A stretch of DNA of 64,000 nucleotides from Thalia democratica (GCA_965202585.1 OZ241830.1:29636001-29700000), one strand, 5' to 3'; counted from the first letter of the stretch, positions 9,993 to 35,019 are shown. The notes: generated by a model from the letters alone, not told the origin. Program-made: numbers and translations.

Positions 9993-10334
9993 TTAAAAGA
10001 AACCAGTGACATAGTCTATTGTGTTCCAGCAATAACCGCATACGTGGCAAAAAATGAAAGCAATAATAAAAGTTTTACTTAATGCCACAAAATTCTTAAA
10101 AACACCCAACAAAATTTGCAATAATTTCTTCGCTATGAAGTATAAAACAAATACTGCTATCAATCCGAATATGAGGTGGAAATAGGAGATTTCACCGTTC
10201 AGTATTGTGGTGGTGTTGATCCCTGTCAAACTGCTGATGATTCCAGGCATTATATAGAACACCGTTTTGCCTGCATAATAAGCTGCTGTTACTGCTGTGC
10301 TGGTGGCATTGTATATTGGTGGTATAGTGTCCAT
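9993..10334 (-). CDS. Small hydrophobic (probably 2-TM) protein, family member A, 113 aa
   Basis: Intact ORF in a GC-richer patch. By manual count it is 72/113 identical, gap-free, to 31416-31757. An acceptor TTTTTTATAG|AAA lies right before the ATG. Confidence 0.85.
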   Translation of the reverse strand: MDTIPPIYNATSTAVTAAYYAGKTVFYIMPGIISSLTGINTTTILNGEISYFHLIFGLIAVFVLYFIAKKLLQILLGVFKNFVALSKTFIIAFIFCHVCGYCWNTIDYVTGFF

Positions 10335-10511
10335 TTTCTATAAAAAATTTGAATTAATACTAAAAATTTACTGGTTTAGTTACTGCATTTAAAATAGCAC
10401 TTTTTAAAGGATTTTACTGTAACAATTAATCACTAAACAAACAGTTATTTTATATTTTAAGTTCTTTTATCTTTTACATAATTTTAGAATTTAGTTTAGT
10501 TTTCAAGTTTA

Positions 10512-10923
10512 CAGGGTTGCTACTCGTTTTTCCAAAATTTTTCCAAGTTTTCCAAATTTCTTCAAGGATTTTTAAAGTACACCTTGTTCAGTCTACTTTT
10601 AGTTTTAAGTTAAAATTAAGGTAAGAAACTGTGTTTAAAAGTATAAAATCATTGAAAATATACTATAAATATTTATTTAAATAAAAAAAAAAATTTATGA
10701 CTACAATTTTTTTTTTATTTATATGATAGATATTTGGAGTAAAATCGTAATTTACTACTAAACATGTGATAATTGTTTAAATTTCAAGTTTTTTTTAGGT
10801 TTTTTAGTATTTGTTTTAAATTCCAGGTTTTTTTCAAAATTTCTAAAATTCCAGGTTTTTATATTTAGTCTAAATTGTCAAATTCCAGGTTTTTACAGGT
10901 TTCCAGGCAATGTGGCAACCCTG
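10512..10923. mobile_element. MITE with CAGGGTTGC(C/T)A terminal inverted repeats
   Basis: CAGGGTTGCTAC ... GTGGCAACCCTG, with TA on both flanks and internal TTCCAGGTTTT subrepeats. Confidence 0.8.
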
Positions 10924-11825
10924 TAGTTGTAGAAAAAGTTTAAATTCTAGCTGTTTTAGTTTTTTAGGACTATTTTTTAAAATGAAAGAACTTAACAAAT
11001 TTGTTCATTATTTTTTTTTTATATCACAGTTTGAGTGATTATAAGCTTTGTAGATTCATTTTAAAACAGTCTAATTTTGTGAAAATGAAAAATAAAATAA
11101 TGGAAATCTAAATCTAATTCAAAAAAATCTTATAAAATTTTGTTCAAGTAAACAGTCTTCTCAAAAAGAAAAAGAATAAACCCTGAATCTAATTTTATAT
11201 AATTTTCTGAGTAATTAAAATGCTACTATTTCAAGTACTTTTGATAGACTAGTTAAATACAACACTCATTCAAAACTTATTTTAGTTACTTAATATATTA
11301 GTTGCAAAAACCTACCAGTAAAATTAAAAGCCTAAAAATTAACCTAAATTAAAAAAAAAAAAAAAATTCACATTCAAGCTAAACAGTATGTTTTATGAAA
11401 TTTGGAGTAAATTAATTAACAAAAAAATAAACTTAATATTTTTCAAAATCTTAAGTTTACTAAACATTGATACAATAATATTGGAAATATTTTCTTAAAA
11501 ACACTTTTTATTATAAAAAGATTTTTTCTAAAATTTTTTACTATGTATAAGAAGTGTTATGTTATATTCTTAGGCCAATATTTTTCATAAGTGTCCAAGC
11601 ATTATTTATAAGAAGACAAAAATTTTAAGCTTCAATAAACTATAATTAACTTTAAATTATTTTTTTTAAATTAAGCTGATTTTAAGTTTTTATAACTTAA
11701 AAAATAAATTAAAAAAGTATAACAAAATGAGTAAAAGAAATCTTATTAAATCTATGCTTACGTTAGAAACAGCAAAAGAAAAAGAAAACATAATGTTTTA
11801 AAAAACTAATGTAAATTCATTAAAA

Positions 11826-12043
11826 CAGGGTTGCCATGCAAAATTCTACAATGTAGTCGGACTTAAAAGGATTTTTGGTATTTTTTCTACCATTTAAGGC
11901 TTCGAAGAATTTGTAAATTAGACTTGACAAATTATGACATTTTTAACTAAAAAACTGATTTTTTTGCCATTTTAATCCTAAAAATCCTGACTTTTTCCAA
12001 ATTTTTAAAATAAACTTATTTGTTCTGACCCAAGAAAACCCTG
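11826..12043. mobile_element. MITE, CAGGGTTGCCA family
   Basis: CAGGGTTGCCAT ... AAAACCCTG termini. Confidence 0.65.
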
Positions 12044-15000
12044 TAATAACTGTAATAAACAAATTTAAATAGCTATTAACTATTTATTTCAAACTTTTTA
12101 TACAACCCTATATAACATAAATTAATTAAGTACTAAGTAGATATTTAATCAGTGGGATAACTAACAAAATTTTAATTTTTCACAACAATTTTTAAATACA
12201 TATTTGATTCATAAAATATAAATTGATTAACTTAAAATAAAAACAGTAAATATTACAAAAAATAATAACATTATGAGATTTTTAGACGTATTATAAAAAT
12301 TATTTTGTACTAAATAATAACTAAAAGTTTCCAAAAAACTATAAATTCTAGCCACAATTAAATAGCTTCTATAATTTATATAACAAGTTAAATAACATAT
12401 AAATGTTTAAACTTAATTTGAATATCCATTTGTTATACAACTTGTTATTTAAATTGTAGAAGTTATAAAGTTATGGCTAGAAAATATTATAACAAACTCT
12501 GCTAAACCATGCACTCAAACTTAAATAACTAAAGGCTTTTAACAAACTTATTCAAATAATTTTAATAATATAACAGATGAACAATTTACTTACCTTTTTA
12601 ATGATGGATGCTTTTAATAGAGTTTAAGACTAGAAGTTAATTAAAAAAATTCTGGTAAAAGATAAAAATTAACATTTATTAGGTTTTTTACTTATTTATA
12701 GAAATATTTTCTAAACATAGTAACTTTATACATGAACAACTTACTTACCTTATCTTATGACAGTTGGTTTCACTAATGAGTAGTCTATCTTTTTCTTTAA
12801 AATCTGTATAAAAAGTATACTGATAAAAATTGTAAAAATTCCTCTTTACGTATAATTGTTTTTTTGAACTCCCGTAGCGCTAGAGAGATTAAATAAAAAT
12901 AATATTTCAAATGAAACTTTTAATTAGGAAATCAATTGACAAAAATACGAATACTGAACAACAGTTTGTTTCTATAAGTTCATTTTTATGGTATTTTCTA
13001 ACAGAAGTGTGGCAATTGTGGCAAAACTTATAAAAATATTGAAAGTGAAGTTTAAGTAAATATAAGCCAAGTACAACGCATATTGATAAAATTTTCAAAG
13101 GCCATTTAATGTAAATATAAGCTAAAGGAGATTTACAAGCTTTTTTAAATATAGTTTTCTTAAGTTAATGTTAAGTAATTTATTTTAAACACTGTACTTG
13201 AATTAATTGACTGGATAAGACCTTAAAAGTATCTGTGTTCTGACTCGATCACCGAAAGATTCTACGTGCACCAGCTCTTTAGACTAATTATTTTGAGCAT
13301 CTTTTTGTCTTTCAATAAAATGTTAACACTGCTGCTTCATGTAGATACTATTTGAACCAATTAATTTCAAGCGAAACATTAATGTACTTCAACAATCAAC
13401 AGCTTTACTAAATTTTGAAATAGCAGTTTTTAAGGTTATCGCAAAAGTTTATATTGTTATTGTGAATTGATTAGTCTTCTGGTTTAAACATAATAAGTTT
13501 AAATTGTGGTAGCATAACTCTTTTTACTTTAACTAAAACTCAGTAATTAAATTTAAAGTTTTTTTTTTAATTTTTAGTAAACGTCTGTTTAAAACACATT
13601 AGTACATTTTTGAAGTTCCTTAGACTATTTTTCAACTTCTAATAAATATTTTTATTTAATTTAGTGCAAAAAATAAAAATTATAAATACATACTTTAAAA
13701 TTTTTTCTAGGAATGCTGATTTCTACATTTTATTGAAATGATAAATATGCAGTACTGTACTATGAAAATTTAAGCTTCTATCAAAGTAACGAAATTACAT
13801 ATATTTTTTAAAAAACTTGCTTGTGCATTTTACTAACTTTTAGAATACTGAATGTTTGAATAAAAGTTATAAGCGTCTAAAGCTATAAAACTAATGTATA
13901 TATACACTTAGTTAATAGTAGAAAAAATCATCAGTGCAGTAAATTTATATTTATTTAAGAAATAAAGAATTTTAGAGTTTGGTTATCTGAAACAGATCAT
14001 CCCATTCTTTTAGCTATATACATTTATTTAGGTTTCTTAATGTCTTTAAATAACATATCAAGATAAATCAACTAATCAAAACTAAAAAAAAAATTAAACT
14101 TATTGATTGAAGATACTTAAGTTTTAGTGTAAAAAAATGTAAATTATTTTTTAGTTTAAAAATACAAACTGTTATTACAGTAATGTCTATTAACTTTTCA
14201 ATAAATAAAATGACTAATAAGTTTGTTTATTAACAATAAGAAGGATTAGTTTAGTTTAAGATCTTTTATTTCACAAAAAAAAATAAGCCTATTGTTAAAC
14301 AGTATTGATAAACAAAGTCAAAAAACTAAACAGATGATTACTACACTCTCAAGCTGATTTAAATGTTTAAAAAATTCAGTGTAATACAGGTTTATTTTAA
14401 CTTTTTTGCTTTCACAAAAATCTGAATTATTTAGGCTTATATAAAGTTTACTGCAAATCTAAGATTAATTTGAATATTTTTTCTGAACATCAGTTTTGTA
14501 TTAAAAGTTTTGTAATTTGCTTTTGAAGTTTTGTATTAATTTCTAAATATTTTTGACTTTGTTATCATTAGAATGCTTTAAAGTTTTATCTTGATTAAAC
14601 TTTTTATTATTATTATTTGGGTAAATCAAAATTATGAGATTTTGTTCAAACTCATGCTTACTTAGCAAAGATTATTTAAAGTTATATTTTTAGAATTTTA
14701 TTTATAAGGTGTTTTGAAAGAAAAAAAAGGTTAAAATCTCAATTAAAAAAAAATAGTTGAAACCTAAAAACAAAGAAAATTATTTACAACAAATTTAGCT
14801 AAGTAAGCAAGAGTTATAACAAAACCTAAAAAGTAATATTAGCCTAGTATTAAAACAGTACAGTGGTAAAAACTTCAAAAAAAGATAAAATTGTAGGTAT
14901 TATTAGTGGTCATTTACAATTAAAGCTTTGTTTTTTTATTTTTTTGTACTTAATAATCTTTATTATGTACAATTTTGAAACACTAACAAATTCTAAATAA

Positions 15001-15216
15001 TACAAATAGACAGAGAAGATATAAAAATAAACTTATCTGTTTAGCTGCTAACAGTGTGTCCTTGTTATTATATAATTAAGAAACATTTAAATTTTTTTAA
15101 TGGCAACCACAGCATTAGTTTAAAAAAGGAGTTGAACAAAAAGTACACTTACTAAAATAACTTAGTGTTTATATTGATGTATAATTTTTTAAAGTACTAC
15201 TATTTTAATTTATTAC

Positions 15217-15554
15217 CAGGGTTGCAACAAGTTTAGGATACCAAGAACAAAAATAACTAATGATATTTTAGCTAGTTTTTTAAACTCCGGATGATTCAGG
15301 AAAGTGTTTTATAATTTATAAGAAACTTAGGATAGTTTAATATTTCTAGAAACCTAGGCCAAGGAGATTTTGAAATTTTTAAATTAGCTTAGTCTTACTG
15401 TTTTGTTTTTTAAAAACAAATTTTATTGAAATAGTTGATTTTGATGATTTTTAAAAGCTATAAAATTTGTTTTTAGAATTTAAAAAACTCAGGATGACTA
15501 AGAACAATTTAAGGTTACCCAGGACAGTTTTTGACTCAGAAAGAGACAACCCTG
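15217..15554. mobile_element. MITE, CAGGGTTG family (inverted homolog at 25461-26104)
   Basis: CAGGGTTGCAAC ... GACAACCCTG termini with internal CAGGA subrepeats. Confidence 0.75.
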
Positions 15555-15887
15555 TAGTATACATACAAATGTATTTAATTTGTAATAAAGCAATAAGAAA
15601 ATAAAGAAAAATAGTAAGTTAAAGCAAATTTAATTTCTGCATACTTGTTAAATTTTATTTCAATTCTAGCACTTACTTCTAAGACTTAGTTTTTGCATAA
15701 TAAAATACAATATCTTAACCAAATATTACATTTGTTTAAATATCAAATAGTTGTTTTATAAAATAGTTTAACAAGAACTAATAGAAGATAACATGTTTAA
15801 ACTTATCAAAAAATTCAGTAGACTTTTAGCTATTTGTATTGAACCAAAATAACGGCTTTTGAACAACCATCTTTGAAGAATGTAGTA

Positions 15888-16113
15888 CAGGTTTCAACAT
15901 AATAAAACAAACTGAAATACTTGCAATAACTTTTAAGTAATTTTTTTGACCATCAGTTTTTTTTAACTAAATAGTAACTTAATTTTAAATTGTCAAAAAA
16001 AGATGTGCATTCAAAAACCAGGAAGAAAATATGAAAAACCTGAAAGAAATTTATAAAACCTGGAACAACCTTAGAAAACCTAAAAGAAAATTAAATAAAT
16101 TTTGGCAACCCTG
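15888..16113. mobile_element. MITE, CAGGGTTGCCA family
   Basis: CAGGTTTCAAC ... TTGGCAACCCTG termini with AAAACCTG subrepeats. Confidence 0.6.
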
Positions 16114-16299
16114 TCTAATAGTTTAATTTTATCAAAAGTGGCGATATCGTTTTATTTTTTGAATCCAGTTTTAGAAAACTTTGTTAAGATATTCTTTATT
16201 TGATAAATAGAATATAAATCGTATCTACGTAGTTATACAGACTTATTTAAAATATGCTTATTTTATAACTAGTCTTATATTTTTCAGAAGTTTAAAAAA

Positions 16300-16656
16300 A
16301 TGGACACATTATACTCAGCCTACACTAAAGCTTCCACCGCCTTCACAGTGGCCCGCACAGCAGCGTCCTGGACTTACTACTGTAGCAAGATGGCTTCGTA
16401 CGACGTTCCGATGTTCTTCAACAGCTTTGTCGGTATTCCTTACTTCAACAGTGCATGGGTTGTTGTTATGATGTGTTTGTTTGTGATCGTCTCCCTGCAG
16501 CTGTACAGCGTGATCACACGACTTCTCAGCGCGCTCATCAAGTCTTCAATGCACGTTGGGGTGGCCATTCTGGCGTATTACTGCTATGCATGGAATATTA
16601 ACGTTTTCGATGCCGCGATGCGATTTTTTTGGTTTGTGACCGCACACTTTTATTAA
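16300..16656 (+). CDS. Small hydrophobic protein, family member B, 118 aa
   Basis: Intact GC-rich ORF in AT-rich DNA. It shares TAASWTYYxSKMASYDxP...IPYFN with 23967-24245, and MDT...Y...STA, K...Y..P....S..GI and a terminal N..D....FF with member A. Acceptor TTTTTCAG|AAG lies just upstream of the ATG. Confidence 0.85.
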   Translation: MDTLYSAYTKASTAFTVARTAASWTYYCSKMASYDVPMFFNSFVGIPYFNSAWVVVMMCLFVIVSLQLYSVITRLLSALIKSSMHVGVAILAYYCYAWNINVFDAAMRFFWFVTAHFY

Positions 16657-17104
16657 AAGTTGTGATGGTTTTAGTGAGTTATAGTAGTTTTGCGTTAATA
16701 AAACATTTTCACACAGTTATTTTACTTTGTTAAAATTTCAAATAACATATTTATATAAATATAATATATATCTAATATTAATGTTACACAAACACAACGT
16801 CCTTTCACCCCACAGGGATCTTCATGCCTGCAAAGTATAAAATAATAAGACGATGGATAACTAAATAATTAGTGTAAAACAATTTTTATAATCAAATATA
16901 TAATGTTTAGAAAAGTCACTTCGGAAATTTAACATGATTTTTAAAGTGAAACAAAAAATAATATATAAGTAGCAATCTTTATACTAAAAAGTATTGATAT
17001 GTTTTATACTGTATTAGATATAGCTTATAAGAAATCAAAAATGGCATTTAAAATTAAAAAAACGGTAAACCTAACAAGCAAAAACAAAAGTAAAAGTTAT
17101 AAAT

Positions 17105-18300
17105 AAGTTAAGTTTTAAAATATAGTTTTTTAAAGTGCGAACAGGTGTAAAAAGTTTTTGACTTTAATTTAGATTTTGTTTTTTGTCAGCAAATGCTCTA
17201 CTATTTTTTTCCAGGTTGCAGGTTTTTCAGATCTTATGTAAATTTTTCAATTCTCAAATCTTATGAATAATGTTCCATTTAAGTTGAATAACTGATGTTC
17301 AATGTTCAATACTTTTTAATTTCCAAATGTACTTAGTAAGTTCTGCTCCTTTGTTTTTTCATTTTTAATGTCACTAAAATGCGCATACCATCTCTTTTGG
17401 AATAAACTTCTCGTAAAGCCTATGTACTCTTATATTCCTTAGTTTCGTTTTGAGTAGTGATTGTTGTCTTGTATATCCTATTCTCCTGCGAACACTTACT
17501 ATTTAAGGGACAAGAATCTTTTTCGCGGCAGTTACACATACTATTCTCTTAATCTTTCTTATTGTTCGTTCTACTTAGTACCTAAGTATTGTGAAGACTT
17601 ATTAACTATTTAAAATTTTCTATACAAAAGTACGATAATTTTCAATTGCTTCTCTTAAAAATCTTTTTTTCGCTCTTGTTTTCAAAGTGTTTATCAATTA
17701 GATCTAAAAACTGTTTTGCAATATTAGTTTAAACTGATTGGCAGTATGGGGGAATTTAGGAACATAGTATTTCCTGTTTCGTTTCCGTTTTTTTTTTGTC
17801 GACGAGGTTGGTTTTATTTTCATATTCAAATTTGTGTTAGGTTGACTAAGAACAGGGAGTCACAAACTTTTATTCAAATGGCCCCCTTTACAGAAAAAAG
17901 AAATATGGCCCCCTTGTATCAAGATTACTCAAAAACTACCATCCAAAGAAACCACATAAGACCTTTTTTTTCGCTCTTCATTAGCAACGTAAAAATATCT
18001 AATGTAAGTTTAAAATTATGTCTTAACGGCTACTTTTTTTTTTGGCTATTTTGCTGCTCACAGCCCCCTGAGTAGGGAGTGACTAGGAGGCCACTTGGCT
18101 TGGGAAACCCTTGCGTAGAGCAACTTCGTACCTATGCTTTGCATTATCGAAGTTTTTTGGGTCTGTAGAAAGTCTGTATAATCTTTTCTCTATCATTTTA
18201 GGTAAGTTTTTACTGATTATCGTCGGGTGGTTAGAGTTGTTGTTGATTTATCTTATAAATTAATGTTAGAATTAAGTCCAGAATAACTTTTGTCGAGACC
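17105..18300 (-). mobile_element. Decayed Penelope-like retroelement (RT C-terminal region, linker, GIY-YIG endonuclease)
   Basis: Frameshifted and stop-riddled minus-strand peptides: SNHPTIISKNLPKMIEKRLYRLS...AKHRYEVAL, NIAKQFLDLIDKHF...KIFKR..KLSYFCIEN, MCNCREKDSCPLNSKC...IYKT, EYIGFT..LFQKRWYAH, LTKYIWKLK...KWNII...TCNL. These are the motifs, in the order, typical of Penelope/Poseidon-type ORFs. Confidence 0.85.
17853..18112. mobile_element. hAT-like MITE inserted into the Penelope-like element
   Basis: CAGGGAGTCACAAAC ... TTGGGAAACCCTT. Penelope coding remnants resume on both sides. The TSD is only partly preserved. Confidence 0.65.
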
Positions 18301-20335
18301 TTTTGTGTTAAAGGAATACTCTTTACATATACCTAAATATGTTGTATGTTTAGTTTTTAAATATAGATTACTTTTTGAGTAATTCTCTTAAAATTTTTAT
18401 TTAAGAATTGAATAGTCTGAATTTGTAAAGTCGTGCACCTAATTTGTATAAATACACTAATATCTTAGAATCAATATACAAATAAAAACACTAAATGAAT
18501 CTTTGACTAAACTATGTAATTCAAGAATAAAACAACGTAATATAAAATGTGTTATACATCTTGTGTGAAAAATACAAGCATTACTTAAAGCTAGTCTATT
18601 TTTTATATCATTAAAATTTTATAAGATTCGAAGTACATCTTTTAATAATATGAGATTTTACTATCATACTCATTATAATAACATGAAAGTTTTGAGTATT
18701 AAACAATATAAAAACTTAAAATAAGCACAAGTAAATCTGTTAAAATCAGTTTAATTAAAAAAAATTCAGTAAAGTTAAATTTTTCCTATTTCATTTTTTT
18801 AGTGCTAGCATAGGTTCGTTAAAATATATTGTGCTTCTAAAATCTTCTAACAATGATATCTTTGTCCCAAATAAAATACCTTATTATTTAAATTTTTTAT
18901 CATTGTTAATTTAAACTTTTTTTGTTGAAGGATAAAAACTAAAAATTTATGTAATTTTGTTGCTTATAGCAGTGCTTATTTTTTTTAAATGTTGAACATC
19001 TAATTTTTTATTTAATTAATCAAAGCATTTAGTAATGCTGCTTAACAAAATGTTTGATTTAAAAATTAACAAGTTTAAAAAATTAAAATTTAACTTTGTG
19101 CAATTGGGCTTAATCGTTAATTTTCATTAAGTTTTTAGAAAAGGGTAATAGAAGGGAGGGAGTAGTAATTAGTAAGGAAATATGATCAATGAATAAATAA
19201 CTAGAAATTATTTAAAACAATTTTTAAAGTGGGTGGTTATAAAATGACTTTTGGACCCGAAATAAACTCTCTTAATTAAAAAAAAATGATGCTATTTTTT
19301 TTTAGTTTTAATTGTTCTACTTTATAAAATAGTTGTTTGTATGTATTACAATGTTATTCATGTTCTGTCACTTGATTTGTGTTTTACTTAATTGAGTACA
19401 GAGTCAAACTATGAATTCGACTAATTCTGCATCAAATAAAAAGCTAGATTGATATTTAATTGTTTTATTGTAAACTAGTGTGTTTTTATGATTATATCAG
19501 CTCAAATAAAGTGACCTTTTAAAACATAAAAAAATACATTTAGTGTATTATAACTTGTAATACTCATTAGTTTTGTTAATTTATGATATTCTAAGTACTT
19601 GTGTAATGGAATAGAGTGCTTTTTTACTAATTCAGACGCTGACTTATCCGGACAGTTTCAGTCAAGAGAAAAAAAAAACAATATTAATAAAAAACATTTT
19701 TGTGTTATATACATAACTTTTCATGCTGTTAGAAAATTTTTAGTGACTTTATTTATTCTGCAATTTAGTTCATTATTATGAAGTAATAATACTACTAAAG
19801 CTTACATTAAAACTTTTTTCCAAACTAGTTTAGTTATTGAAATTCTTTGTATGTAAAGTAATTCAAATTTTTATTTTTCTTAATAATTTTTATTTAAACT
19901 ATTTCAAAACGTAAAGTTTATTTTGATAACTGACTAAATTCTAAGTTTTTCAGAAAAAGAATGTATAACAGTTTTTTTATATTTGATTATTAATTTAAGC
20001 TATACTATAAATGTTAATCCAAACACTTTTTGTATAAGGTGAGGTAGATGACAATTTTTAATTATAAGTTAAATAGGTTTGACACACTCGATTTAGTAAG
20101 TTTTAAAAATGAACAAGACATCATAAAAAAATCGAGTTGCAATAAACATTGAAAAAAGCTAGAAAATTGTAAAATGGTTAAAGACTATATTCCAAAGTCT
20201 TTTATAACTAAGCAGTTTAGCATAGGCAGGTAGGTCCCTATTTTGAAAAATAAAGAAAAATTTAAAATGTTTAAAGGAGAAAAAGAGGAGGTGAGCTTTT
20301 ACTATTTATTATCTATTGCATATTATGTAGAAGTA

Positions 20336-20447
20336 TAGCAGCTATACTAATTTATGAAGATTATATTTTTTGTACTTGTCCGAAAAATTCTTATCCGAAC
20401 ATGTTTTATAGAAAAATCATGTCCGGATAAGTTAATAAGTACTGCTG
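20336..20447. mobile_element. Possible pogo/Tigger-like MITE (related right-end fragment at 6262-6303)
   Basis: Inverted TTATCCG / CGGATAAG subterminal motifs ending in ACTG or GCTG next to T(T)A. Confidence 0.35.
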
Positions 20448-22159: not shown

Positions 22160-22685
22160 CAGTGGCGTCGCGAGGTATTTTTCTTAGGTGGTGCAGATAA
22201 AAAAAAATCCGTGTTGCCAGAGCTTTAATTGCACCTACTCCAGTTGTCCCTGCACGAATTGCCTCTGCTCGATTAGTCCCTGCTCGAGTTGTACCTGCTT
22301 GAGTTGCCTCTGCTTGAGTTGTCCCTGCTCGAGTTGTACCTGCTCGAGTTGCCTCCGCTCGAGTTACTTTGTTTTCTTTTTTTTTTACAACCGCTTGTGG
22401 AATGATATTTAAACCTGTACTGCTTTAGGGAATTTTCAACTTAGATTACTTACCGCAAGATATTGATTTTGCGGTATTTCTTGAAAAAATTTTGCTTTTT
22501 TGAGTTCATTTGCGGCAATCAGTTAAGAATTTGCGGCAGTGTAGTAAGCAAAATGGTCGTTGTCTCAACTGGAGTTTTATAAGAGATTTTGTTCTAAAAA
22601 ATAACTAAAACGTTATAGATACTTAACATTTTCTTACAAATATTAAAGTGGTGCAGTTGCGGCAGTGCAACACCCCACGCCCCTG
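22160..22685. mobile_element. Non-autonomous hAT-type element with perfect 8-bp TSD
   Basis: TSD GCCAATGT at 22152-22159 and 22686-22693. Termini CAGTGGCGT ... ACGCCCCTG. Confidence 0.85.
22241..22365. repeat. 15-bp minisatellite (~8.3 units) with 45-bp higher-order period
   Basis: Units are GAGTTG(TCC/TAC/CCT)CTGCT(C/T); the variants cycle TCC-TAC-CCT. Confidence 0.9.
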
Positions 22686-23556
22686 GCCAATGTATTAAAT
22701 TAGGGCAACGTACGGCCGGCAAAATGAAAAAAAAAACTGGCCCGCCATTGTCTACAAAACTTAAGTTGAATCCGGCTTGCGAAAAGTAGAATTCAGACTC
22801 CAAAGCTAAACTTAGATTATACTGGATAATCATGAATACTGGAGGAGGACAAAAGTCTTTTGTTCAATTTACTTTAGATTTAAAACTTTCACCTGTTTTA
22901 ATAAAAAAAGGTGAAGTAGAATAAGTATTTCGTCGAAATAAACCTGTAACTGAATAAAAACTTATTAAAAAGTATTTATATTCAAAGAAAATTTGAACAT
23001 TTTTTAAACTAATTTATTAACGTTGACTATAAACAACAAAGACTATTATTTAATTCTGTAAGTTGAAAAAATATTAATTACTAAGAAATAAGAAATCTTA
23101 GAATTACCGTAGAACTTTGTAACATCATATACAAAGATATAAGTATTCAAAAATAGAATTTAAAACGATAAAAAATCTAAACAAATAATATATAATAGCT
23201 GTATTGTTATTTGGGCAAATTTTTCCAAGGTTTACGAAAATTCTTCAAAGTTATTAAACTTACACGTTGTAGGGTCTATTATTAGTTAAAAATTAAGTTT
23301 TAGGGAAAAAATGTACAACATTGTTAAAACATCTTAATGCTTCTTTAAATGTGATTTTTAATAAAAAAACATTTTGCTAACGAATTTTTTTTTAACCTTT
23401 ACGATAGATGTTGTGTGTCAAATCGAAATTTTACTACTCAACTGGTAAATGTTATTTTTAATTCAAGGTTTTTCAATGTACTTTTAGCCTAAATAGTCGG
23501 ATTCAAGAGTTTTCCTGTATTCCAGACTTTTTGATAACGCTGTTTGTAGCTTGTAT

Positions 23557-23691
23557 TTAATTAAGATTTTTAACACCTTTAGTAAACTCTAAAATAGATA
23601 AAACTCGCAAGTAACACTTGATAAGAGCGTCTAAAAGTCGCATGATTATGTAGCACAACTTCAGATAGAAGAGCACAAATACACACATCAT
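23557..23691 (-). CDS. Truncated B-type paralog (44 aa, C-terminal half only); gene fragment or pseudogene
   Basis: MMCVFVLFYLKLCYIIMRLLDALIKCYLRVLSILEFTKGVKNLN* aligns with B (MMCLFVIVSLQLYSVITRLLSALIK) and B' (RLAGNLVKCYLRV). DNA at 23603-23625 nearly duplicates 23989-24011. It is preceded by TTTTTTATCATAG|A. Confidence 0.55.
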   Translation of the reverse strand: MMCVFVLFYLKLCYIIMRLLDALIKCYLRVLSILEFTKGVKNLN

Positions 23692-23966
23692 AACACTTAA
23701 AAGAGTCTATGATAAAAAATATATATATGGTGCACTGTTATTTGTAACTTATATTAAATTAAGATTCTTGACATGTTATACATATAAAAAAGAGGCGATA
23801 AAATCTAAATTTAATTTAATGGTTTATTGAACGAAAAAAAAGCGCTCAAAACGTTTGGTCCAATGTCCTGGTGTACGAAAAAATCATTCGGTTACCCAGT
23901 CATACACTCCAAGTGCACTTTAGTAAGTTTTACCATGACTTTTATATTAGTATTTTTCCTTTAGTA

Positions 23967-24245
23967 TTACAGCTCAATATCAAATACGACTCGCAAGTAA
24001 CACTTGACAAGATTGCCTGCAAGTCGCATCATCATGCATAAAAACTTCATAGAGAAGTAGACATACACAATCATCGTAAGAACAGTCCATGGCGTGTTGA
24101 AGTAAGGAATATCGACCAAATTGTTTAAGTACACCGGTATGTCGTATGAAGCCATCTTGCTCAAATAGTAGGTCCAGGACGCTGCTGTGTAAATAAATGC
24201 GACGGCCTTTACCGCTTTGGTGTAAACTAAATAAGCGGTGTTCAT
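23967..24245 (-). CDS. Small hydrophobic protein, family member B', 92 aa (C-terminally shorter than B)
   Basis: Clear paralog of 16300-16656. The upstream sequence TTATTTAAA..TAT..TA.TTTATAAC...ATTTTTCAG|AA is also conserved with B. Confidence 0.8.
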   Translation of the reverse strand: MNTAYLVYTKAVKAVAFIYTAASWTYYLSKMASYDIPVYLNNLVDIPYFNTPWTVLTMIVYVYFSMKFLCMMMRLAGNLVKCYLRVVFDIEL

Positions 24246-25460
24246 TATATTAAAATAATTCTGAAAAATGTTGGGTTGGTTATAAAGTAGGTATATTTAA
24301 ATAACGATGATAGTGTACAAGCCGTCTACATTTAGTTTTTTACAGTTTACATTTAGTTTGCCCTTGAAAATTGCAGTCACTTTTTCAATCTCTCTAATGC
24401 AGGATTTCCAAAAGTAGATGATATAAACCACCTTGGATTAATAGTGATTGGGAAAAATATTCGATTGATAACATTATATTTAACAAAATTTATAAGAAAG
24501 ACGGTTACTCATTTCAATTCTTCTTAAGTACATCAGGAAACTTAATAATTTATATACTGATTTATAAATTTACTTGCTCCTCGTTTACTAGTGTTAATTT
24601 TATTAAAAAATAAACTAACTTTGAAACTATGGTTCAACTACCATTATTTCAATAAAAAATGTTAAGACTTTTTGAACAAAATAAAATATATACGATGGAC
24701 TTTGATACATAGAGTAGAAAAAACAGTTTTGGTACATTCTACCTTTTATGTACCAGAAAATAAGTATAACTAATTACATTAACTTTTATATATATTATAT
24801 GTGTTTTAATTTTTTTTAAAATTCGAAAAAAAATTCCTAATAGTAGCTATATCTTAAAACTAGCTTTAAAAAATACTCATTGAAATGTTGACCCTGCTTA
24901 CATTTACCCTACCAAGAAAAATATGTAGATTTCTAAGTGAAGCAGCACATAGTCTGACTATTTTGCGTGAGTGTATTAGTTATTTTTTAATATAGCAATT
25001 CATAATGTTTAATAACCTTAGACTTTTACAATGTTGCCATTCTTTAGCTACCTCAAATCAGAGTGTCCGAAACTAGTCAGATTTGTATTTTATTATTACA
25101 TATCATACTATGTATTATTAAAGATTATTATCTGAGATAAAGTAAAAACAAAAACTCGAAATTTTATAGTTACTTTTATTTTGGCTTATTTACCCAATAA
25201 ATGTATAAGATACACAAAAGAACTTCAAATACAAAAAAAAGTTAATTAAAAAAAGCTAGCCTTAAAGTCAATACATAGCTTAATATTTGCCAATATTTTA
25301 ACCAATTTTTAATATAACTTAAAAGTTTATAAGTTATTTAAACATAGTTTTATTCAACTTTTTTTTACTTCTTGTGTTTATTTTAATTTTGAAAATGTAA
25401 GGGAATGATATAGAAATTTTAAAAAATTTATGTAATACTAAATATGTTTATGTAAACTAA

Positions 25461-26104
25461 AGGGTTGCCTGTCTTTAAGTCAAAAAACTGTCCTGAGTTT
25501 TTTAAAATTCTTTAAAAAAAATTGAATAATTTTAAAATCTATAAAATTCAAGTTTTTAAATAAATTTGTTATAAAATAGTAAATTTCAGAAAATAAATGA
25601 ACTAAATGTTTTCAAAATCTAGAATAGGGTTTTCCAAAAGTGGGCGATTTTAGTAAGTTGGAGAGCAAAAATTAGTAATGGGTGAAATGGGGGCAAATTT
25701 TTGGCGCCAAAGTGGGCAAAAAAAAGTTTTAGGTGTATTTATGTATTTATTAGTAATTTTGAAACTTTCACAATATACTCTTGAGTTGTAGATGAAGAAT
25801 TAAAAAAGGTCTTAAGTGTATTAAATGTAGTTTTTTGAGTAGTCTTGTGTAGGGGGCAATAGCTTTTTTAATTCTTCAAAGGGGGCAATTTGAAAAAAAA
25901 AGTTTGAAAACTCTGATCTAAAAAATATGTGGCCTTAGATTTATATAAGTCTTATAACTATCCTGCGGTTAAAAAAAAAAAAAAAACTATCGTGAGCTAT
26001 CCTGAGATTAAAATAAAAGTCAAAATATGATTAGTCATTCTGATAATTAAAAAAATTAAAAATACCCTGAGTTATCATGTTAATCATTAGTGCGTGGCTT
26101 CCCT
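25461..26104. mobile_element. CAGGGTTG-family MITE (inverted relative to 15217-15554), split by a nested insertion
   Basis: Starts AGGGTTGCCTGTCTTTAAGTCAAAAAACTGTCC, matching the reverse complement of the end of 15217-15554. Similarity resumes after 25923 (GGCCTTAGATTT...AACTATCCTG). It ends GTGGCTTCCCTTG. Confidence 0.65.
25625..25915. mobile_element. hAT (Charlie-like) MITE, nested
   Basis: TSD ATCTAGAA (25617-25624) / ATCTAAAA (25916-25923). Termini TAGGGTTTTCCAAA ... TTTGAAAACTCTG. Confidence 0.75.
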
Positions 26105-29100
26105 TGAAGTACAAATGAAAGTACTAGTTTTATAAATAATCTTAAAACACTAACATACTCTTAATATTGTTATTTAAATACTTTAAAGTTTATTAAGAAA
26201 CTATACTTTACATTTGTAATTCTTTTTTAATCCTTAATCAGATTTGATTTTAGCTGTTACTCCTAGCTTTAACAGCTACAACTGACTTTATTGACTTTGG
26301 CTCTTTATTAGTAATGATGAACATCTTTACAAAATACTTTTTTACGGTCCTATTTAGTTTTAAGTAATAAATATTTAACATTAGTTTTACTTGAAAATTT
26401 TTTAATGCTTGTAATCTTATTTCTTCCTCAAAAAGTAAAAGTAATTCTGGTTTTTAACTAATTTTACTAAAAGACTAAAAAAGTGTTGATAATGAATTTA
26501 AAGTAGATAAAAAACAAGCATTACATTAAAAAAAATTGTAGTAATAACTAGTACTAGATTTAAAAATTATAAAATATAGCCTAAACTTATACAAAAAGTA
26601 AAACAGATTATATACTGTTTAATTTCCTGAAAAGATTATATAAAAATAAACAAACATTACATTCAAAAGGAAAATATAGCATTCACTAGAAAAAATAAAA
26701 TAAAGCTTAAATTTAACTTTTACAAAAAGTCCAAAAATTGTTTTTTATAAATTGCCTAAAAAAAATTTTGCATGCAGAAGTCCGCCTAAAATTCTTCAAC
26801 TAATAAAATGTTTTCTAGATTACAGAAAATAAAGTAAATGTTTCTTTTTTTTAGTTTCTTAGATCCCATATAAAAATATTTCTAATTGGAAGCTTTTAAT
26901 GATATAAAAAGTATACTAAAAAGTCTTGCTTATAGTTTTTCAAATTTCTTTGAATCTTTTACTAGAGGAAACAATAACTAAGACAGAAATAGAAATTACA
27001 AAGAAAAACCCAGTTTTTTTTTCAGTATGAAGTTCAAAGTCAACTTATAAAATCAACTATTTATTTTAATTTTTTGCAATATTACTTTTTAACTAATAAA
27101 CTATTAAGTATAAGTATTTGAGAAAACAAATGCATATTTATATCAAAGTTAATTGAATCTGAGCCTTTAAAAATCTTATAGAATACAAAAGTCCTGAACT
27201 GAAAATGCTTCTAATTAAGTTTGTATATTTTGTTTTATTAACCAAAAGAGTCAGTCAGTACCTAAAAAAAACTTGAAAATAAAAAATCTGTACTGTAAAG
27301 ATAGTTTATAGATTTAGGAAAAAATATCCAAACTAGCTTTGCAAAATACTTTAATTAAGCTTAAGTCAACAGTGCTTTTTATTAAACTAAAAAAATTATT
27401 AAACTAAGATGAGTTACTTTGATTTTTTAAGTACTTTAAAGTAGCCTGAGGGTGTGGTATGGTTACCCTGAGTGTAATTATAAATTTTAATTTTAACTAT
27501 TTTAGAAAACCAGAAAAAAAAGTTATGATATTGATATTCTTTTATTTAAACTACCAATTTTCTATTTCTAAAGTTCATTAACTAACTTATTAAGTTATTT
27601 TTCTTTCATAAGTTGATAGAAATTTACGTATAAACAGTTTAAAACTTTTGGTAAAGCTGTAACGAGCTGCTGCAAAATTCCTTCCACTGTTTGAACATTG
27701 AACTCAAGAGAATATTTTTAGAGCTCGATACGGTCGCATGCACGAGCCAATGGGAATCAAGGCTCCTGATGCAATGATTCATAAAAACATGACAATACAG
27801 TTTTTATGAGAGAAGTTAGTCAGTTCTTTTGAGAGCAGCAACATAAATTGAACTTGTTTGGATTTGTTTCTTCTAAGTATGGATATATATACATATAGAT
27901 TAAAAATATAAATTGATTTAAGTTATCTGAGTTAAATTTAAAAGTTTTGTAATTATTAAATCTTTAGTAGTTTTATTGCACACTAAATGTTTTATTTAAC
28001 TTTTAGTTTATTGTTTTTTTATTGAAAAAGACATAAATATTAACAATTGTTTAAATGCTTATATCTTACTTACTAAAACTTGGTTTTTTATTAAGTTGCA
28101 CTTTTACTTAAATATAAAGTTTTAAAAATAATTTGATGTTTGATATTTTGCTTGTATTTCTTGTGGTTCTTTATATTGTGGATACATCACTCCAAACTGT
28201 CTTCTCTGATTATATAAAGTAGTCTAGAATACCTTTAAGTATTTTATAGATAGAGTCCACTTATATGTTACAAGTTTGCAAAAGTATTTTATATTTAATG
28301 TGTCCAACCTAAGTAATATAAAAGAGAAGTTGTGTGCAACGGGTCCTAAGCATAACAGTGATAGAAATTCACCCCGCCAGCAGAAAAAGTATAATCAAAA
28401 AAGTCAGGTTGAAAATCTACCCACAGAAAGTCAACCAGACCCAACTGAGGCTTTTGATGTTGAACCACCAACATCTTCAGCTCATTAACTAATCTTCATT
28501 TAATTAAACTAATCTAACTTTAAGTTCAAATGTTAATTTAATGGGGAAAACTTAAAATATTACAATGTTAAAATTAAGTTACTTTAGTCATGGTCTGGTA
28601 TTTCTCATTCAATATTAAAGAAACATTGAACTAGATGGTAAATTTTAAAAGTGCTAAAAATTAAAAACTTTATGGTAAGTTTAGAGGACCATTAAGATAA
28701 AAACTTTAAAATGATTCATTAAATTTAAATCTGATATTAAAATATAATATTAAAAAGCTTGGATTAAAGTTTTTGAATCTAACCAAATTGAATTTGAAAT
28801 AAATAATATTATTCTAATACTAAAAATTAAGTTCACAAAAATAAATCAAACTTTTTATACAAGTCCTAGTACATCATTTTAATTTAGTTACATAAACTTA
28901 TGTTTTTATTAAAAGAAACTTAAGTAAATTAGTCTTGGACTTTATTTTTCAAAGGGCTTTCAATAATTTAAATTTGTAGTGACTTAATAGTGAGCTAATA
29001 ACTTAGAGCTTTGTTTAGCTGCTTTCAAATATTGTTAGTATTAAAAAACTAAAGCTTAGGAATGCAATTAAAGAAGGAGGCAAAGTTGTTTACTTTAAAA

Positions 29101-30100
29101 GCTTAATATAATTTTTTTACCTACTTAATATTTTTAACTGATTTGTCTTTCTTTAACTTAACTTTAAGTATTTTTACAAGTCAAAGTTATCAGATTTCAG
29201 GGTGAAAAGGCCAAAAACTAAACATTAAATCAAAACAGAAATAAGTTTAATTTAATATTCAAAACTTTTAATATTTTGCAATTCTTATTTTAAGTTATTT
29301 ATTTGAAGTTATGCTTTTAAGCGCCACTTGTGGTTAAATTCAAAAATAAACTTCATACATAGTGCTGAATTTTAAATATTGATCAGATTTTTTTTCAGAA
29401 ATAGGTAAACTAGTTAATGTTTTTTGAAAGCAGCTGGAATATAAAAGAGGTTAGTAGTTTGTTCATCTATTGTATTGTAAGTTTTTATTGTAAGTATGAA
29501 ATGCCTTAAGTTACTAAAGTTTATGTGCATGTTATAGTAGAATAGTGAAAAATAAATTTATAGTAATCATTTGATAAGCTACTATGGTTAAAAAAAATCT
29601 AAGCGTAATAAAAGAGAAACATTTAAATTTTGAAGTTTACCTTTTTTTTTTTGATTTTTTCTAATGTGTTTAGGTACAACACAATTTTTTCTATCCTAAC
29701 TTAGATAAAAGTTAAATAATAATAAATTTTTTGTTTATTTTTAGTGTAATTAAATCTCTACTTGAATATTTCAATAGTGAAATTATTACAAATATTTAAA
29801 AAAAATCTTACAACTTTGTTGAAAACTGCACGTAATATTTTTTTTTTGTTTTATATAATTTATGCATTGAACATTTATTTGAAAACATTGTTATAAAAAA
29901 ATGTGTTGATTGTCCTAATCATGATAAAAATATACTGAAAACTTAATATTTTATGTTAAACGTTGCATAAAAAATTAACCATAAATAACTATCTTAATAA
30001 AGTTTAAATCTAAAGAAATGACTTTCTTAGGATTACAAAAAAATCTCATTTTCTAATAATTTTGCTTTTTTATTTTAACTATAAAACTCAAAAAAATTTT

Positions 30101-30303
30101 TGGGTTGCCATTTTACCTGGAAACCTGGAAAAAACTGGAAAAATCTTGAATTTGAGAAATTAAAAAAAAATATGGAAAAACCCGGAATTTTGAATAAAAA
30201 CCACTTTAAAACCTACAGTAACCTTAAATTTAAACAATAAGACCAAAAAAAAAGTACTTTTAAAAATCCGGAGTAAATTTGCCAAAAGTCGGTGTCAAAC
30301 CTA
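30101..30303. mobile_element. MITE of the 10512-10923 family in inverted orientation
   Basis: TGGGTTGCCATTTTACCTGGAAACCTGGAAAAAACTGG matches the reverse complement of the right end of 10512-10923. Confidence 0.7.
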
Positions 30304-31415
30304 TTTTATTTTATTCAGTTGTAAGGTGTGAATATTGGTTCACTCAATGGTTTATTGGTAATACTTATCATTACTAAATTCTACCTTATTTAGTTACTAC
30401 ATTATAAACTCTAGATTCTATTTGACCATATTTTATATAAATCAGACAAAACAGTTTAAACAATGTATATATTATAAAAAAGAACCAAAAACATTACTTG
30501 AACAAAACAATTTTATATTAATGTATTATTAAAAACTTCAGTCAAATAAAACAACTGTGCTTGCTTAAAAGCTTTGCAGATGTGCATTTTATAAAATCTA
30601 GAACCTTTTATATTCTTTATTCCTAGTTTTAGGTAGTCTACTATAACTGAAATTAATTAGTAATTTTGACACCGCATAGTAGTATTAAGTAGAATTAGAT
30701 ATTTTGATTGGATAAATTTATTAAATGCAGGATGTTTATATCTTAAATAAGTTTTCTGTCCTAATTGAACATCTAAAAAAATATTTAATGTAAAAAACAG
30801 CTTTTTCTGATAAAAATAAATATTCTGTAGATTAAATAACTTTTTTTTATTTTGAAGCATTTTTTGATATTATTTTACAGCTTAGCTAGAAATGTTGTGA
30901 ATAATATCTGCATAGAATAATGTATCTAAATTTTAGTATGATTATTACTTAAAAGCTTAGTCATTTATTAAAACTTCTTATTATATTATAAGTGTAGCAA
31001 AGTAATTTTTTTAATCAGAAAATTCTTCTTTGAGTTAATAAATTTTCCTATGATCTAATGAATTTGTTCTAATAATGCTTAATAAACAGTTTTATAAACA
31101 TATCGGAAACAATGATGTATTTTATATTTCCAAACATTAGTTATTTTAATAATAAGTCTTAGACTAAAGTCCTTTAGAAGTTGCTGACTTAATTTCAGTT
31201 ACTTAACCAGCAAGTCGATATTAATATTTCTTTTCATAAATTTAACTTATACATAATTATTAATAGAGCTGAAGTTACTAATAGATAGAAAGAAAAAAAA
31301 AACATATGTCTTTTAAATTTTGTTATAGTACATAATTACAATAATTAAAAGTCGCAAAATTCTATTCAAATAATTTTTTAAATTAATTTCATTTTTTTTC
31401 AGAAAGTTTAAGAAA

Positions 31416-31757
31416 ATGGACACCATAACACCAATATACAATGCCACCAGCACTGTAGTATCAGCAGCTTATTATGCAAGCAAAACAGTGTTCGATACAA
31501 TGCCAGGAATCATCAGCAGTCTCACAGGAGCTAACACCGCCACAATAATAACCATTGAAAGCTCTTACTTCAACCTCGTATTCGCATTGATAGTAGTGTT
31601 TATTTTCTTCGTGATAGCGAAGAATTTACTAACAATGTTTTGGAATGTTGTGAAAAATTGTGTGGCATTATGTACGACTTTTATTGTTGTTATTATTGTG
31701 TGTCATGTATGTGATTATAGTTTTAACACAATTGACTGCATTACTAGTAAATTTTAG
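31416..31757 (+). CDS. Small hydrophobic protein, family member A', 113 aa
   Basis: Intact ORF with the same length as 9993-10334 and 64% identity to it. Acceptor TTTTTTTTCAG|AAAG lies just upstream of the ATG. Confidence 0.85.
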   Translation: MDTITPIYNATSTVVSAAYYASKTVFDTMPGIISSLTGANTATIITIESSYFNLVFALIVVFIFFVIAKNLLTMFWNVVKNCVALCTTFIVVIIVCHVCDYSFNTIDCITSKF

Positions 31758-34749: not shown

Positions 34750-35019
34750 ATGGGTCTTGTTCAAAACGCTGAAACCCATTCCTTTGATGACTTCTTTACA
34801 ACAGCTAAAAAGTGGTTTCTCGGATTTACCTTGGGTTTTGTCTCTCTGATATGCTGCGTTGGCGTTCTGATGATTTTTGGCTCGTTCCTGAAAGATTGGT
34901 GCGATGGGAAAATTGTTGGCGAGTGGGGAATTTTTTATGTGATGCGGCCTCAGTTTTATGTTGCAATTCTTATTTCGTCGACTTTAGGTTTCTTGAAAAT
35001 CATAAAATTTTTCAATTAA
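34750..35019 (+). CDS. Small 2-TM protein of unknown function, 89 aa
   Basis: GC-richer ORF with two hydrophobic segments (FLGFTLGFVSLICCVGVLMIFGSFL; FYVAILISSTLGFL). Acceptor TTTGAAACAG|A at 34710. Homology to the A/B family is not established. Confidence 0.55.
   Translation: MGLVQNAETHSFDDFFTTAKKWFLGFTLGFVSLICCVGVLMIFGSFLKDWCDGKIVGEWGIFYVMRPQFYVAILISSTLGFLKIIKFFN

Follow-up and report, generated by a model that had tools for sequence, protein, structure and literature searches.

The window analysed here, a stretch of 64,000 nucleotides of Thalia democratica DNA, carries four short genes, A, B, B' and A', which on the evidence of their sequence are real conserved genes of an undescribed family of ~100-residue membrane proteins. 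Probably they code for small integral-membrane proteins and form an orphan family that undergoes birth-and-death evolution in a pelagic tunicate. Comparison with related sequences establishes that the four genes belong together, that their reading frames are conserved under a moderate purifying selection, and that the family is restricted to one lineage. We infer that the ORFs are translated.

Genes of the window and their structure

An earlier note on this DNA had pointed out five small ORFs as GC-richer patches. All five lie where it had placed them (Table 1), and the family ORFs indeed have a GC content of 0.43–0.51 against a background of 0.22–0.24. The four longer ones are clear paralogues in the alignment, as had been claimed, and make up four of the five ATG-initiated ORFs of at least 90 aa in positions 1–39000 of the window. 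A and A' form an inverted repeat of 346 nt (9994–10339 / 31411–31756) which is 78% identical, similarity being undetectable in the flanks; their proteins are 64% identical, and the earlier counts—33 of 40 identical residues in the N-terminal part, 39 of 73 in the remainder—were reproduced exactly. The three motifs proposed for the family are literal in A and B, and only partial in A' and B'. As for the fifth ORF, it is present but lies inside a broken copy of the 3' half of B': the profile match is limited there to positions 40–100, one TAG and one TAA interrupt the extended match, and the inverted repeat I2 ties this partial copy to B.

Table 1. Genes and associated elements of the family, in coordinates of the window.
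Feature	Position	Strand	Description	State
Gene A	9993–10334	-	CDS 113 aa, A type; stop TAA 9995–9993	intact ORF
Gene B	16300–16656	+	CDS 118 aa, long B type	intact ORF
Gene B'	23967–24245	-	CDS 92 aa, short form	intact ORF
Gene A'	31416–31757	+	CDS 113 aa, A type	intact ORF
44-aa ORF	23557–23691	-	inside partial copy of B' 3' half, 23542–23724 (-)	broken copy
Putative 3' splice/trans-splice acceptor of A	10335–10350	-	T-rich tract, AG 10339–10338, 3-nt leader AAA	
Putative acceptor of A'	AG 31411–31412	+	3-nt leader before ATG	
Putative acceptor of B	16264–16299	+	branch-point-like TATAACTAG, polypyrimidine tract, CAG (AG 16286–16287), 12-nt leader	
Putative acceptor of B'	24246–24263	-	CAG 24263–24261, 15-nt leader	
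3' UTR of A	9878–9992	-	AATAAA 9936–9931	conserved
AATAAA of B	16697–16702	+	41 nt past stop	
Upstream block (promoter or outron) of A-type genes	10924–11250	-		conserved

Each gene would be compact: a conserved block upstream is followed by a 3' splice or trans-splice acceptor, then by one uninterrupted CDS of 92–119 codons, and finally by a short 3' UTR, in which most copies have AATAAA or a hexamer close to it. A putative acceptor, with its branch point, polypyrimidine tract and AG, is conserved 3–40 nt upstream of nearly every ATG. The genes had been described as intronless; this holds for the CDS, but the conserved acceptor just before the start codon makes it improbable that the genes are unspliced. 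In the A type the sequence ...TTTTTTATAG/AAAATGG is common to A, its recent duplicate, A' and two Tara orthologues. In the B type, B, B' and three Tara genes carry TATTTTTCAG 12–20 nt before their ATG, replaced in the C9 copy by the variant TTTTAGAG; in the C5 copy the leader is longer. The stretch from AG to ATG is untranslated, as is shown by its in-frame stops in the C5, C9 and P0008 copies.

Downstream, the 3' UTR of A shows ~90% identity with Tara contig L018, whereas the neutral flank shows 79%; the block around the AATAAA of B resembles that of the C5 and C9 copies, where the hexamer is AACAAA and GATAAA, respectively. Upstream, the block of the A-type genes shows invariant segments aligned across A, its recent duplicate and two Tara orthologues. 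In A it is separated from the CDS by a repeat insertion (~10510–10923, boundaries by blastn), which has a very high depth in DNA runs and is absent from the recent duplicate. A candidate donor, AAG/GTAA, occurs upstream of A-type genes; as it is not kept in A nor in one Tara orthologue, we do not claim a cis intron in the 5' UTR of this type.

Constraint on the reading frames

Purifying selection on the family appears moderate. It had been proposed from preserved length and frame, and is confirmed for most older pairs, whose dN/dS ranges from 0.31 to 0.66 (Fisher p 3e-6 to 0.03 for most); it does not extend to the youngest pair—A and its duplicate—for which dN/dS is ~1.1 (1.10). Apart from this pair, a dN/dS near 1, which the earlier note regarded as a sign against its reading, was looked for and not found. 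The ratio is 0.46 for A and its L018 orthologue, 0.51 for A' and A, and 0.48 for A' and Tara P0003. It falls to 0.31 for B and Tara P0004 (p=3e-6), with 0.39 for B and the C5 copy of its own genome. For B' it is 0.40 with P0006 (p=0.0016) and 0.72, not significant, with P0005.

The frame itself is well kept. Between A and L018 the CDS is 87.7% identical in nucleotides without any indel, whereas the 1.2-kb orthologous flank is 79% identical with 15 indel events; at the rate of the flank ~4.2 indels would be expected in the CDS (P=0.015). In a second DNA sample a piece of the A CDS is 1.5% diverged, versus 6–9% in its flanks. The differences rank codon position 3 > 1 > 2 in all eight pairs compared, the skew being individually significant in only two. 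GC3 is 0.36–0.70 in the family CDSs (0.62 in B) against a background of 0.22–0.24, a nearby bona fide exon reaching 0.80, and it exceeds GC1 and GC2 in all B-type and most A-type copies. The CDS of B' is no better conserved than its upstream flank when compared with the closest orthologue (88.2% and 86.5%).

This conservation is unevenly distributed. The earlier note saw a conserved N-terminus followed by a fast-evolving membrane part: this is true for the A type, whereas the B type has, if anything, the stronger constraint on its membrane part. Between A and its orthologue the two thirds that code for the membrane part show 81% identity, near the neutral 79%, and the first 135 nt show 97.8%, with a dS of 0.06 versus 0.41 in the remainder. 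These values point to some constraint at the nucleotide level on the first 135 nt of A-type genes.

Relatives, history and protein architecture

The family had been said to be unrecognised, and the searches agree: no Pfam cut-off was reached, and a match to a known family, the other sign taken against that reading, was likewise not found. A profile search of 1.84 billion protein representatives gave four real matches, all from marine metagenomes; six came from a set of 5.8 billion proteins, searched by words and by profile. The PDB returned no match at E<=10 in a sequence profile search, and nothing at E<=0.001 with Foldseek. The ESM Atlas search by shape found only helical stretches of unrelated transporters, and its feature search gave A and B scores of at most 0.84, i.e. 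chance level, which by the tool's own calibration is anything below 0.9. Patterns of the A and B types, scanned against the viral contigs of IMG/VR and the metagenomes of JGI, yielded no relatives, and hhalign detected no relation between the family and a neighbouring 89-aa membrane ORF. As a check on the tunicate origin, the cellulose synthase model PF03552, of plant/bacterial type, was scanned and gave no match, although it may not suit the enzyme of tunicates.

The Pfam scans of all members gave sub-threshold matches only, to Apq12 (discussed below), OST3_OST6, DUF7554 and TrbL. OST3/OST6 proteins consist of a thioredoxin-like lumenal domain and four transmembrane helices. The match to their model (PF04756; 17.8 bits for a cut-off of 27) covers just positions 134–204 of 294, and the thioredoxin domain is absent from the 113-aa protein, so that we rejected this candidate. 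DUF7554 (PF24431) was discarded as well: its best E is 0.0006, below the 25-bit cut-off, and because among the control genomes it matches Haloferax volcanii only, the likeness probably reflects two unrelated transmembrane hairpins. The family would then be lineage-restricted, bearing in mind that the protein collections searched often leave such short eukaryote ORFs unannotated, and, as far as they reach, previously undescribed.

The same genome contains further copies: A has a recent duplicate, which lies 38 kb upstream of the window, two other chromosomes carry intact copies of the B type, and a divergent copy has 91 aa. Altogether the copies number only ~10, over at least four chromosomes, and are arranged in inverted order. 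One of them, C1, is clearly dead: its ATG is gone, 10 nt are deleted and a TAA is present. The Tara gene syntenic with C1 remains intact, and its sequence is the same in 10 contigs from at least nine assemblies, although this was an exact-sequence look-up, biased toward identity. Outside this genome, relatives come from marine plankton metagenome contigs only, some of them syntenic with the A, B' and C1 loci. In the FastTree tree Tara sequences nest inside each of the A, A', B and B' clades, A' grouping with P0002 and P0003, so that these subtypes predate speciation. Each subtype is retained in related species, the short B' form included: its end codon is shared with the syntenic Tara orthologue (L021, P0005) and with P0006. 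From this we reconstruct an old head-to-head A–B pair, duplicated before the split of the sampled species to give A<-->B and B'<-->A'. Afterwards a second duplication of A followed, copies of the B type spread to further chromosomes, and some copies decayed.

The membrane-protein appearance proposed earlier is borne out by hydropathy and hydrophobic moment: two hydrophobic segments (~49–68 and 85–106) are joined by an amphipathic stretch (65–88, muH ~0.47). The predicted chain begins with an N-terminal helix, continues with a first hydrophobic helix and a basic amphipathic one, and closes with a second hydrophobic one, without signal peptide or large ectodomain. The N-terminal helix would span ~45 residues rich in Ala, Ser, Thr and Tyr, the amphipathic one would have Lys/Arg on one face, and the second hydrophobic helix would bear a Cys/aromatic motif. 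The short B' (92 aa) stops behind the amphipathic helix; of the predicted parts only the second hydrophobic helix is missing. AlphaFold2, run on two alignments, is of low to middling confidence (pLDDT 65.5 and 75.2, pTM ~0.3) and draws region 49–106 as one continuous helix with pLDDT 65–75. A clear membrane orientation by charge distribution is seen for the A type only, whose N-terminal segment contains an invariant N-A-T sequon and few positive charges. At least in this type the protein may fold as a hairpin with both termini exoplasmic and the basic helix on the cytosolic leaflet.

By analogy, such proteins would serve in a membrane complex as small subunits, accessory or regulatory, rather than as enzymes or receptors, with A and B possibly acting together.

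Alternative explanations and comparison with known systems

The ORFs could be untranslated, representing either conserved GC-richer non-coding elements or RNA genes, or young pseudogenes still undecayed. We consider this unlikely. It would agree with the sequencing runs that carry gene A, all three being DNA and none RNA (which is no proof of silence), with the weak amino-acid selection in some pairs, and with the conservation of synonymous sites in the first 135 nt of the A type. Nevertheless about ten independent frames, intact and of the same length with homologous start and stop, are observed across paralogues and species, and they persist in DNA where stop codons arise easily; the older pairs have a dN/dS below 1, the codon-position pattern and the GC3 excess over the other positions fit coding, and the genuinely dead C1 copy displays its decay locally. 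An accessory gene of a transposon or of an integrated virus is another origin to consider, given the spread of copies in inverted order over several chromosomes and the high-copy repeat adjoining A. However similarity between the paralogues is limited to the CDS and to short blocks of UTR or promoter, and neither terminal repeats nor a transposase are found nearby; the copy number is merely ~10, IMG/VR and the viral proteins of the 1.84-billion library hold no match, the loci are syntenic between species, and the repeat beside A is an insertion missing from the recent duplicate. A mobile origin is, for us, extremely unlikely.

The genes might also be diverged, perhaps retroposed, copies of a conserved small membrane protein of the ER or nuclear envelope, e.g. 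an Apq12-like hairpin or another small subunit. Apq12, a fungal nuclear-envelope/ER protein, is composed of a hydrophobic, an amphipathic and again a hydrophobic helix, an order which the predicted one of the family resembles. It is besides the commonest sub-threshold Pfam match (PF12716; 6 of 11 members, best E 0.0032 for B'), and when B was run through the Atlas feature search, the two best rows that have a name were clusters with Apq12, scoring 0.82 and 0.78. Yet these two scores are at chance level, every Pfam score is under the curated cut-off (17.8 versus 25 bits), and a six-frame scan of the whole genome gives 14 equally weak matches at unrelated places, among which B' is third with E=1.65. 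As the profile search of 1.84 billion proteins reached neither Apq12 nor any named family, and as the 45 conserved N-terminal residues have no counterpart in the Apq12 model, this kinship looks improbable. On role alone, the family could serve in gamete or self/non-self recognition, immunity or pore formation, as is conceivable for genes that are clustered, confined to a single lineage, fairly fast-evolving and subject to gain and loss; the N-A-T sequon and the few positive charges of the A type would fit an exposed exoplasmic tail. But clear positive selection is seen in no pair, the part that might be exposed, i.e. the N-terminus of the A type, varies least instead of most, and signal peptide and large ectodomain are both lacking. 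Moreover the B-type gene found identical in the ocean contigs is therefore not hypervariable, with the reserve that the look-up favours identity. Such a role appears to us quite unlikely. From their head-to-head position and joint duplication, the A and B types might further be imagined as the two subunits of a salp-specific heteromeric membrane complex, a small channel of a new kind or a module of cell–cell or colony recognition, their strongly conserved, sequon-bearing N-terminal tails being exoplasmic and the short B' a natural modulator, but we regard this precise arrangement as very unlikely.

If, as we prefer, these are real genes of an orphan membrane-protein family, the phenomenon itself is an ordinary one, and a family known from sequence alone bears on no long-standing question. 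It adds one well-delimited orphan family to the thaliacean tunicates, a chordate lineage with a barely annotated genome. Its clear division into the types A, long B and short B', with copies live and dead, makes it a compact case for the origin, duplication and death of small membrane proteins in a very AT-rich, fast-evolving genome, and a test case for whether gene finders miss such ORFs.

Among known systems, the family compares in size class, predicted helical membrane anchors and absence of enzymatic motifs with micropeptides of the phospholamban/sarcolipin type and with the small subunits of OST, signal peptidase and EMC. It matches none of these proteins in sequence or fold, OST3_OST6 being below cut-off and PDB and Foldseek giving nothing. 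With Apq12 (PF12716) it has in common a similar size and, as predicted, the helix order, besides a recurrent weak HMM signal; on the other hand the scores stay below cut-off and at the noise level of the genome, and the N-terminal region is unmatched, so that homology is not demonstrable. The closest parallel is with the taxonomically restricted small transmembrane families found in most animal genomes. Like them, the family consists of short single-CDS genes with homologues in a narrow lineage only, encodes hydrophobic helical proteins under moderate purifying selection, and undergoes local duplication and pseudogenisation. It differs from them in general by its conserved non-transmembrane N-terminal region of ~45 residues, by a conserved short isoform, B', and by the old paired arrangement of A and B.

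Two pairs of small genes in gene-poor DNA

A, B, B' and A' represent a real gene family, not described before, whose products are predicted to be small membrane proteins. The five ORFs claimed by the earlier note, i.e. these four genes and a 44-aa fragment, are all present in the ORF list exactly where it had placed them; they align together as one family, and they stand out, as it had stated, as GC-richer patches (0.43-0.51 GC versus 0.22-0.24 in the surrounding DNA). A and A' are 64% identical, A type and B type 21-25%, and a recount of the A versus A' identities returned the same 33/40 and 39/73. The three proposed family motifs are literal in A and B but only partial in A' and B'.

The window (C6:29,636,001-29,700,000, no N runs) belongs to an assembly of 801.8 Mb; in a comparative tunicate study, the genome of this salp has 790.7 Mb and 25.3% GC (PMC13746493). 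Between positions 1 and 39000, four of the five ATG-ORFs of at least 90 aa are A, B, B' and A', and the inverted repeat formed by A and A' is the CDS alone (9994-10339 versus 31411-31756, 78% identical). Both this repeat and the ORF clustering go well beyond chance. A and B lie head to head with their starts 5,966 nt apart, and so do B' and A' (7,171 nt); this arrangement of both pairs, together with the tree, is what a single ancient, inverted duplication of an A-B pair would leave. The DNA around the A-A' cluster is gene-poor; the cluster is downstream of and outside an Ikaros-like gene, of which a 180-aa ORF without Pfam match at E<=0.1 is probably the last exon.

Features of the window, further copies in the genome and predicted protein elements
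Feature	Position	Strand	Description
Gene A	9993-10334	-	113 aa, ORF list
Gene B	16300-16656	+	118 aa, ORF list
Gene B'	23967-24245	-	92 aa, ORF list
Family fragment	23557-23691	-	44 aa, ORF list
Gene A'	31416-31757	+	113 aa, ORF list
Repeat	2890-3300; ~36630-37050 (region 36600-37150)		two copies
High-copy repeat	~10444-10995		insertion versus recent A duplicate, 10510-10923
Repeat-end motif	~16118-16127		~180 nt upstream of B's ATG
74-aa ORF	22188-22412		Cys/Ser-rich; GC-rich patch
15-bp minisatellite	22234-22365		8.8 copies of CCTGCTCGAGTTGTC
89-aa ORF	34750-35019	+	two hydrophobic segments; own GC-richer patch
180-aa ORF	40040-40582	-	two C-terminal C2H2-like fingers, Ikaros/Hunchback dimerisation type; GC3 0.80
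A-type copy L004	38 kb upstream of window		intact, 113 aa, 89% identical to A
B-type copy L006	C5		intact, 119 aa
B-type copy L008	C9		intact, 104 aa
Divergent copy L010	C5		91 aa
Broken copy L007	C1:50330980-50334264 (G000)		pseudogene
N-terminal helix	about 13-43 residues		rich in Ala, Ser, Thr, Tyr
Hydrophobic helix 1	residues ~49-68
Amphipathic helix	residues ~65-88		muH ~0.47; Lys/Arg every 7-11 residues
Hydrophobic helix 2	residues ~85-106		A type carries C-H-x-C-x-Y-C-W-N-x-x-D

Other elements share the window. The 89-aa ORF has neither a Pfam match nor an hhalign relation to the A/B family; a genome search found seven further copies, of which several are broken; C9 has one, and the other six are on C6 (29.755, 29.777, 29.780, 29.981, 30.033 and 30.050 Mb). 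It represents a second, unrelated orphan membrane-ORF cluster. The 74-aa ORF is created by the minisatellite and is not a family gene. The repeat at 2890-3300 also occurs, at 81-86% identity, on a Tara contig of a related species (L037:165-383).

Gene structure and predicted protein

A good putative 3' splice site is read upstream of nearly every family start codon. In A-type genes a T-run precedes ATAG (or, in A' and one Tara orthologue, AAG), and AAA and the ATG come next; in most B-type copies a branch-point-like TATAACTAA precedes TATTTTTCAG and a leader of 12-20 nt, the exceptions being the C9 copy, with the variant TTTTAGAG, and the C5 copy, with a longer leader. Since the leaders of the various copies are not multiples of three in length, and the leaders of the C5 and C9 copies and of the metagenome homologue P0008 contain in-frame stops, the family ATG is the predicted true start and the CDS would be complete in a single exon. 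The conserved acceptor before nearly all start codons and the untranslated character of the leader suggest that the mRNA is probably spliced there. The earlier description as intronless thus holds for the uninterrupted CDS, but probably not for the mRNA leader. Its partner could be a non-coding exon farther upstream or else a spliced leader of the sort described in Ciona and Oikopleura (PMC1488885, PMC6883708). The candidate splice donor seen upstream of A-type genes is not conserved.

An AATAAA lies 41 nt past the stop in B and 57 nt past it in A; the surrounding 3' UTR is conserved, to about 90% between A and its orthologue. The site reads AACAAA in the C5 copy and GATAAA in the C9 copy, and at the corresponding position A's recent duplicate lacks an AATAAA. 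Some 250-500 nt upstream of A-type genes lies a conserved block that probably bears the promoter; in A it has been moved away by a high-copy repeat, whose insertion measures 414 nt. The summed contig depth of this repeat is 1e5 to 6e5, versus a few hundred in adjoining bins. The insertion point is about 175 nt before A's ATG, the repeat's ends are CAGGGTTGCC... and ...GGCAACCCTG, and the same end motif recurs upstream of B; these GTTGCC/GGCAAC ends look like X-box half-sites.

Hydropathy, hydrophobic-moment profiles and AlphaFold2 agree on the order of the protein elements. A-type proteins have one Lys and an invariant N-A-T sequon in their N-terminal 48 residues, KK after TM1 and an acidic tail; read by the positive-inside rule, this charge distribution suggests that both termini are exoplasmic, with the basic helix at the cytosolic leaflet. 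In the B type, the charges leave the orientation undecided.

Copies, orthologues and coding constraint

A profile scan of the whole genome yields the five window loci and the further copies of the table; weaker matches, with several stops each, look like noise. Outside this genome, a word-index protein search found three A-type proteins, and an exhaustive profile search of 1.84 billion representatives only four real matches, a fifth being a spurious match to an LRR protein (E=3.5e-4 over 25 residues); extending to 5.8 billion proteins added P0008. All are encoded on marine metagenome contigs of 25-30% GC, from ocean plankton and mostly from Tara Oceans PRJEB4352, and scans of JGI metagenomes and of IMG/VR viral contigs gave no relatives. 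The family is confined to one lineage, with gene gain and loss.

The metagenome relatives are orthologues from sister species. Collinearity was found between contig L018 and the A locus (CDS 87.7% identical, 1.2-kb upstream block 79%), between L021, across its full 840 nt, and the B' locus, and between L037 and the C1 locus. In a FastTree phylogeny the metagenome sequences nest within the A, A', B and B' clades, which indicates that the subtypes predate the split of the sampled species and have each been retained since. The short B' is not a decaying copy, as both P0005, its orthologue, and P0006, which is more distant, stop at the same codon.

The earlier note had also argued for purifying selection, and most older pairs agree: dN/dS (Nei-Gojobori) is 0.31-0.66 in most of them, and below 1 by Fisher test in most of those, e.g. 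0.31 for B versus P0004 (p=3e-6), 0.40 for B' versus P0006 (p=0.0016) and 0.46 for A versus P0001 (p=0.02). Codon positions differ in the order 3 > 1 > 2 in all eight pairs tested, the skew being individually significant in two only. The CDS of A has no indel relative to its orthologue, where 4.2 are expected from the flank rate (P=0.015); in another DNA sample, divergence is 1.5% over a 200-nt stretch of CDS versus 6-9% for flanking pieces. In the A type GC3 runs from 0.36 to 0.47, and in the B type from 0.52 to 0.70, with a background of 0.22-0.24 and 0.80 in the adjoining Ikaros-like exon. The C1 pseudogene serves as a control for a dead copy: it has lost its start (ATG->ATA) and carries a 10-nt deletion, a 3-nt deletion and TAC->TAA; its syntenic counterpart P0008 (on L037) is intact in a related species from Tara metagenomes. 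The P0008 CDS is identical in 10 contigs from at least nine assemblies, with some 33 variable positions over about 4.2 kb of flanks, a contrast given little weight because the exact-sequence look-up biases it.

Certain pairs are less constrained. A versus its recent duplicate gives a dN/dS of 1.10 (dS 0.04); B' versus P0005 gives 0.72 (not significant), with a CDS hardly better conserved than the flank (88.2% versus 86.5%); and within A's membrane-coding part, identity with the orthologue is 81%, near the neutral 79%. Given these weak points, the coding constraint is real but moderate, and the substitution patterns indicate moderate purifying selection on the family.

In the first 135 nt of the A CDS (10334-10200, -), synonymous sites are also conserved (97.8% identity with the Tara orthologue, dS 0.06); the remainder is 81.4% identical (dS 0.41), with a neutral flank at 79%. 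This suggests an additional nucleotide-level constraint on the 5' third of A-type CDSs.

Comparison with known families

The earlier note had recognised no known domain; indeed no family member reaches a Pfam cut-off, and a PDB sequence search with the family returned zero matches. The AlphaFold2 models (pLDDT 65 and 75, pTM about 0.3) are too low in confidence for fold matching, and fold searches with them returned nothing meaningful. Nothing supports a transposon or virus origin. DUF7554 was discarded as a relative, having been seen among the control genomes only in the archaeon Haloferax volcanii. An Apq12 signal recurs below threshold, in six of 11 members and two Atlas rows. However, in the salp's own genome the Apq12 model matches 14 unrelated places equally well, so that the likeness would be one of architecture, with homology not demonstrated.

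Orphan families of this kind are common. Judging by analogy and gene arrangement, our best guess is that the proteins are small accessory membrane subunits, with A and B possibly working together.
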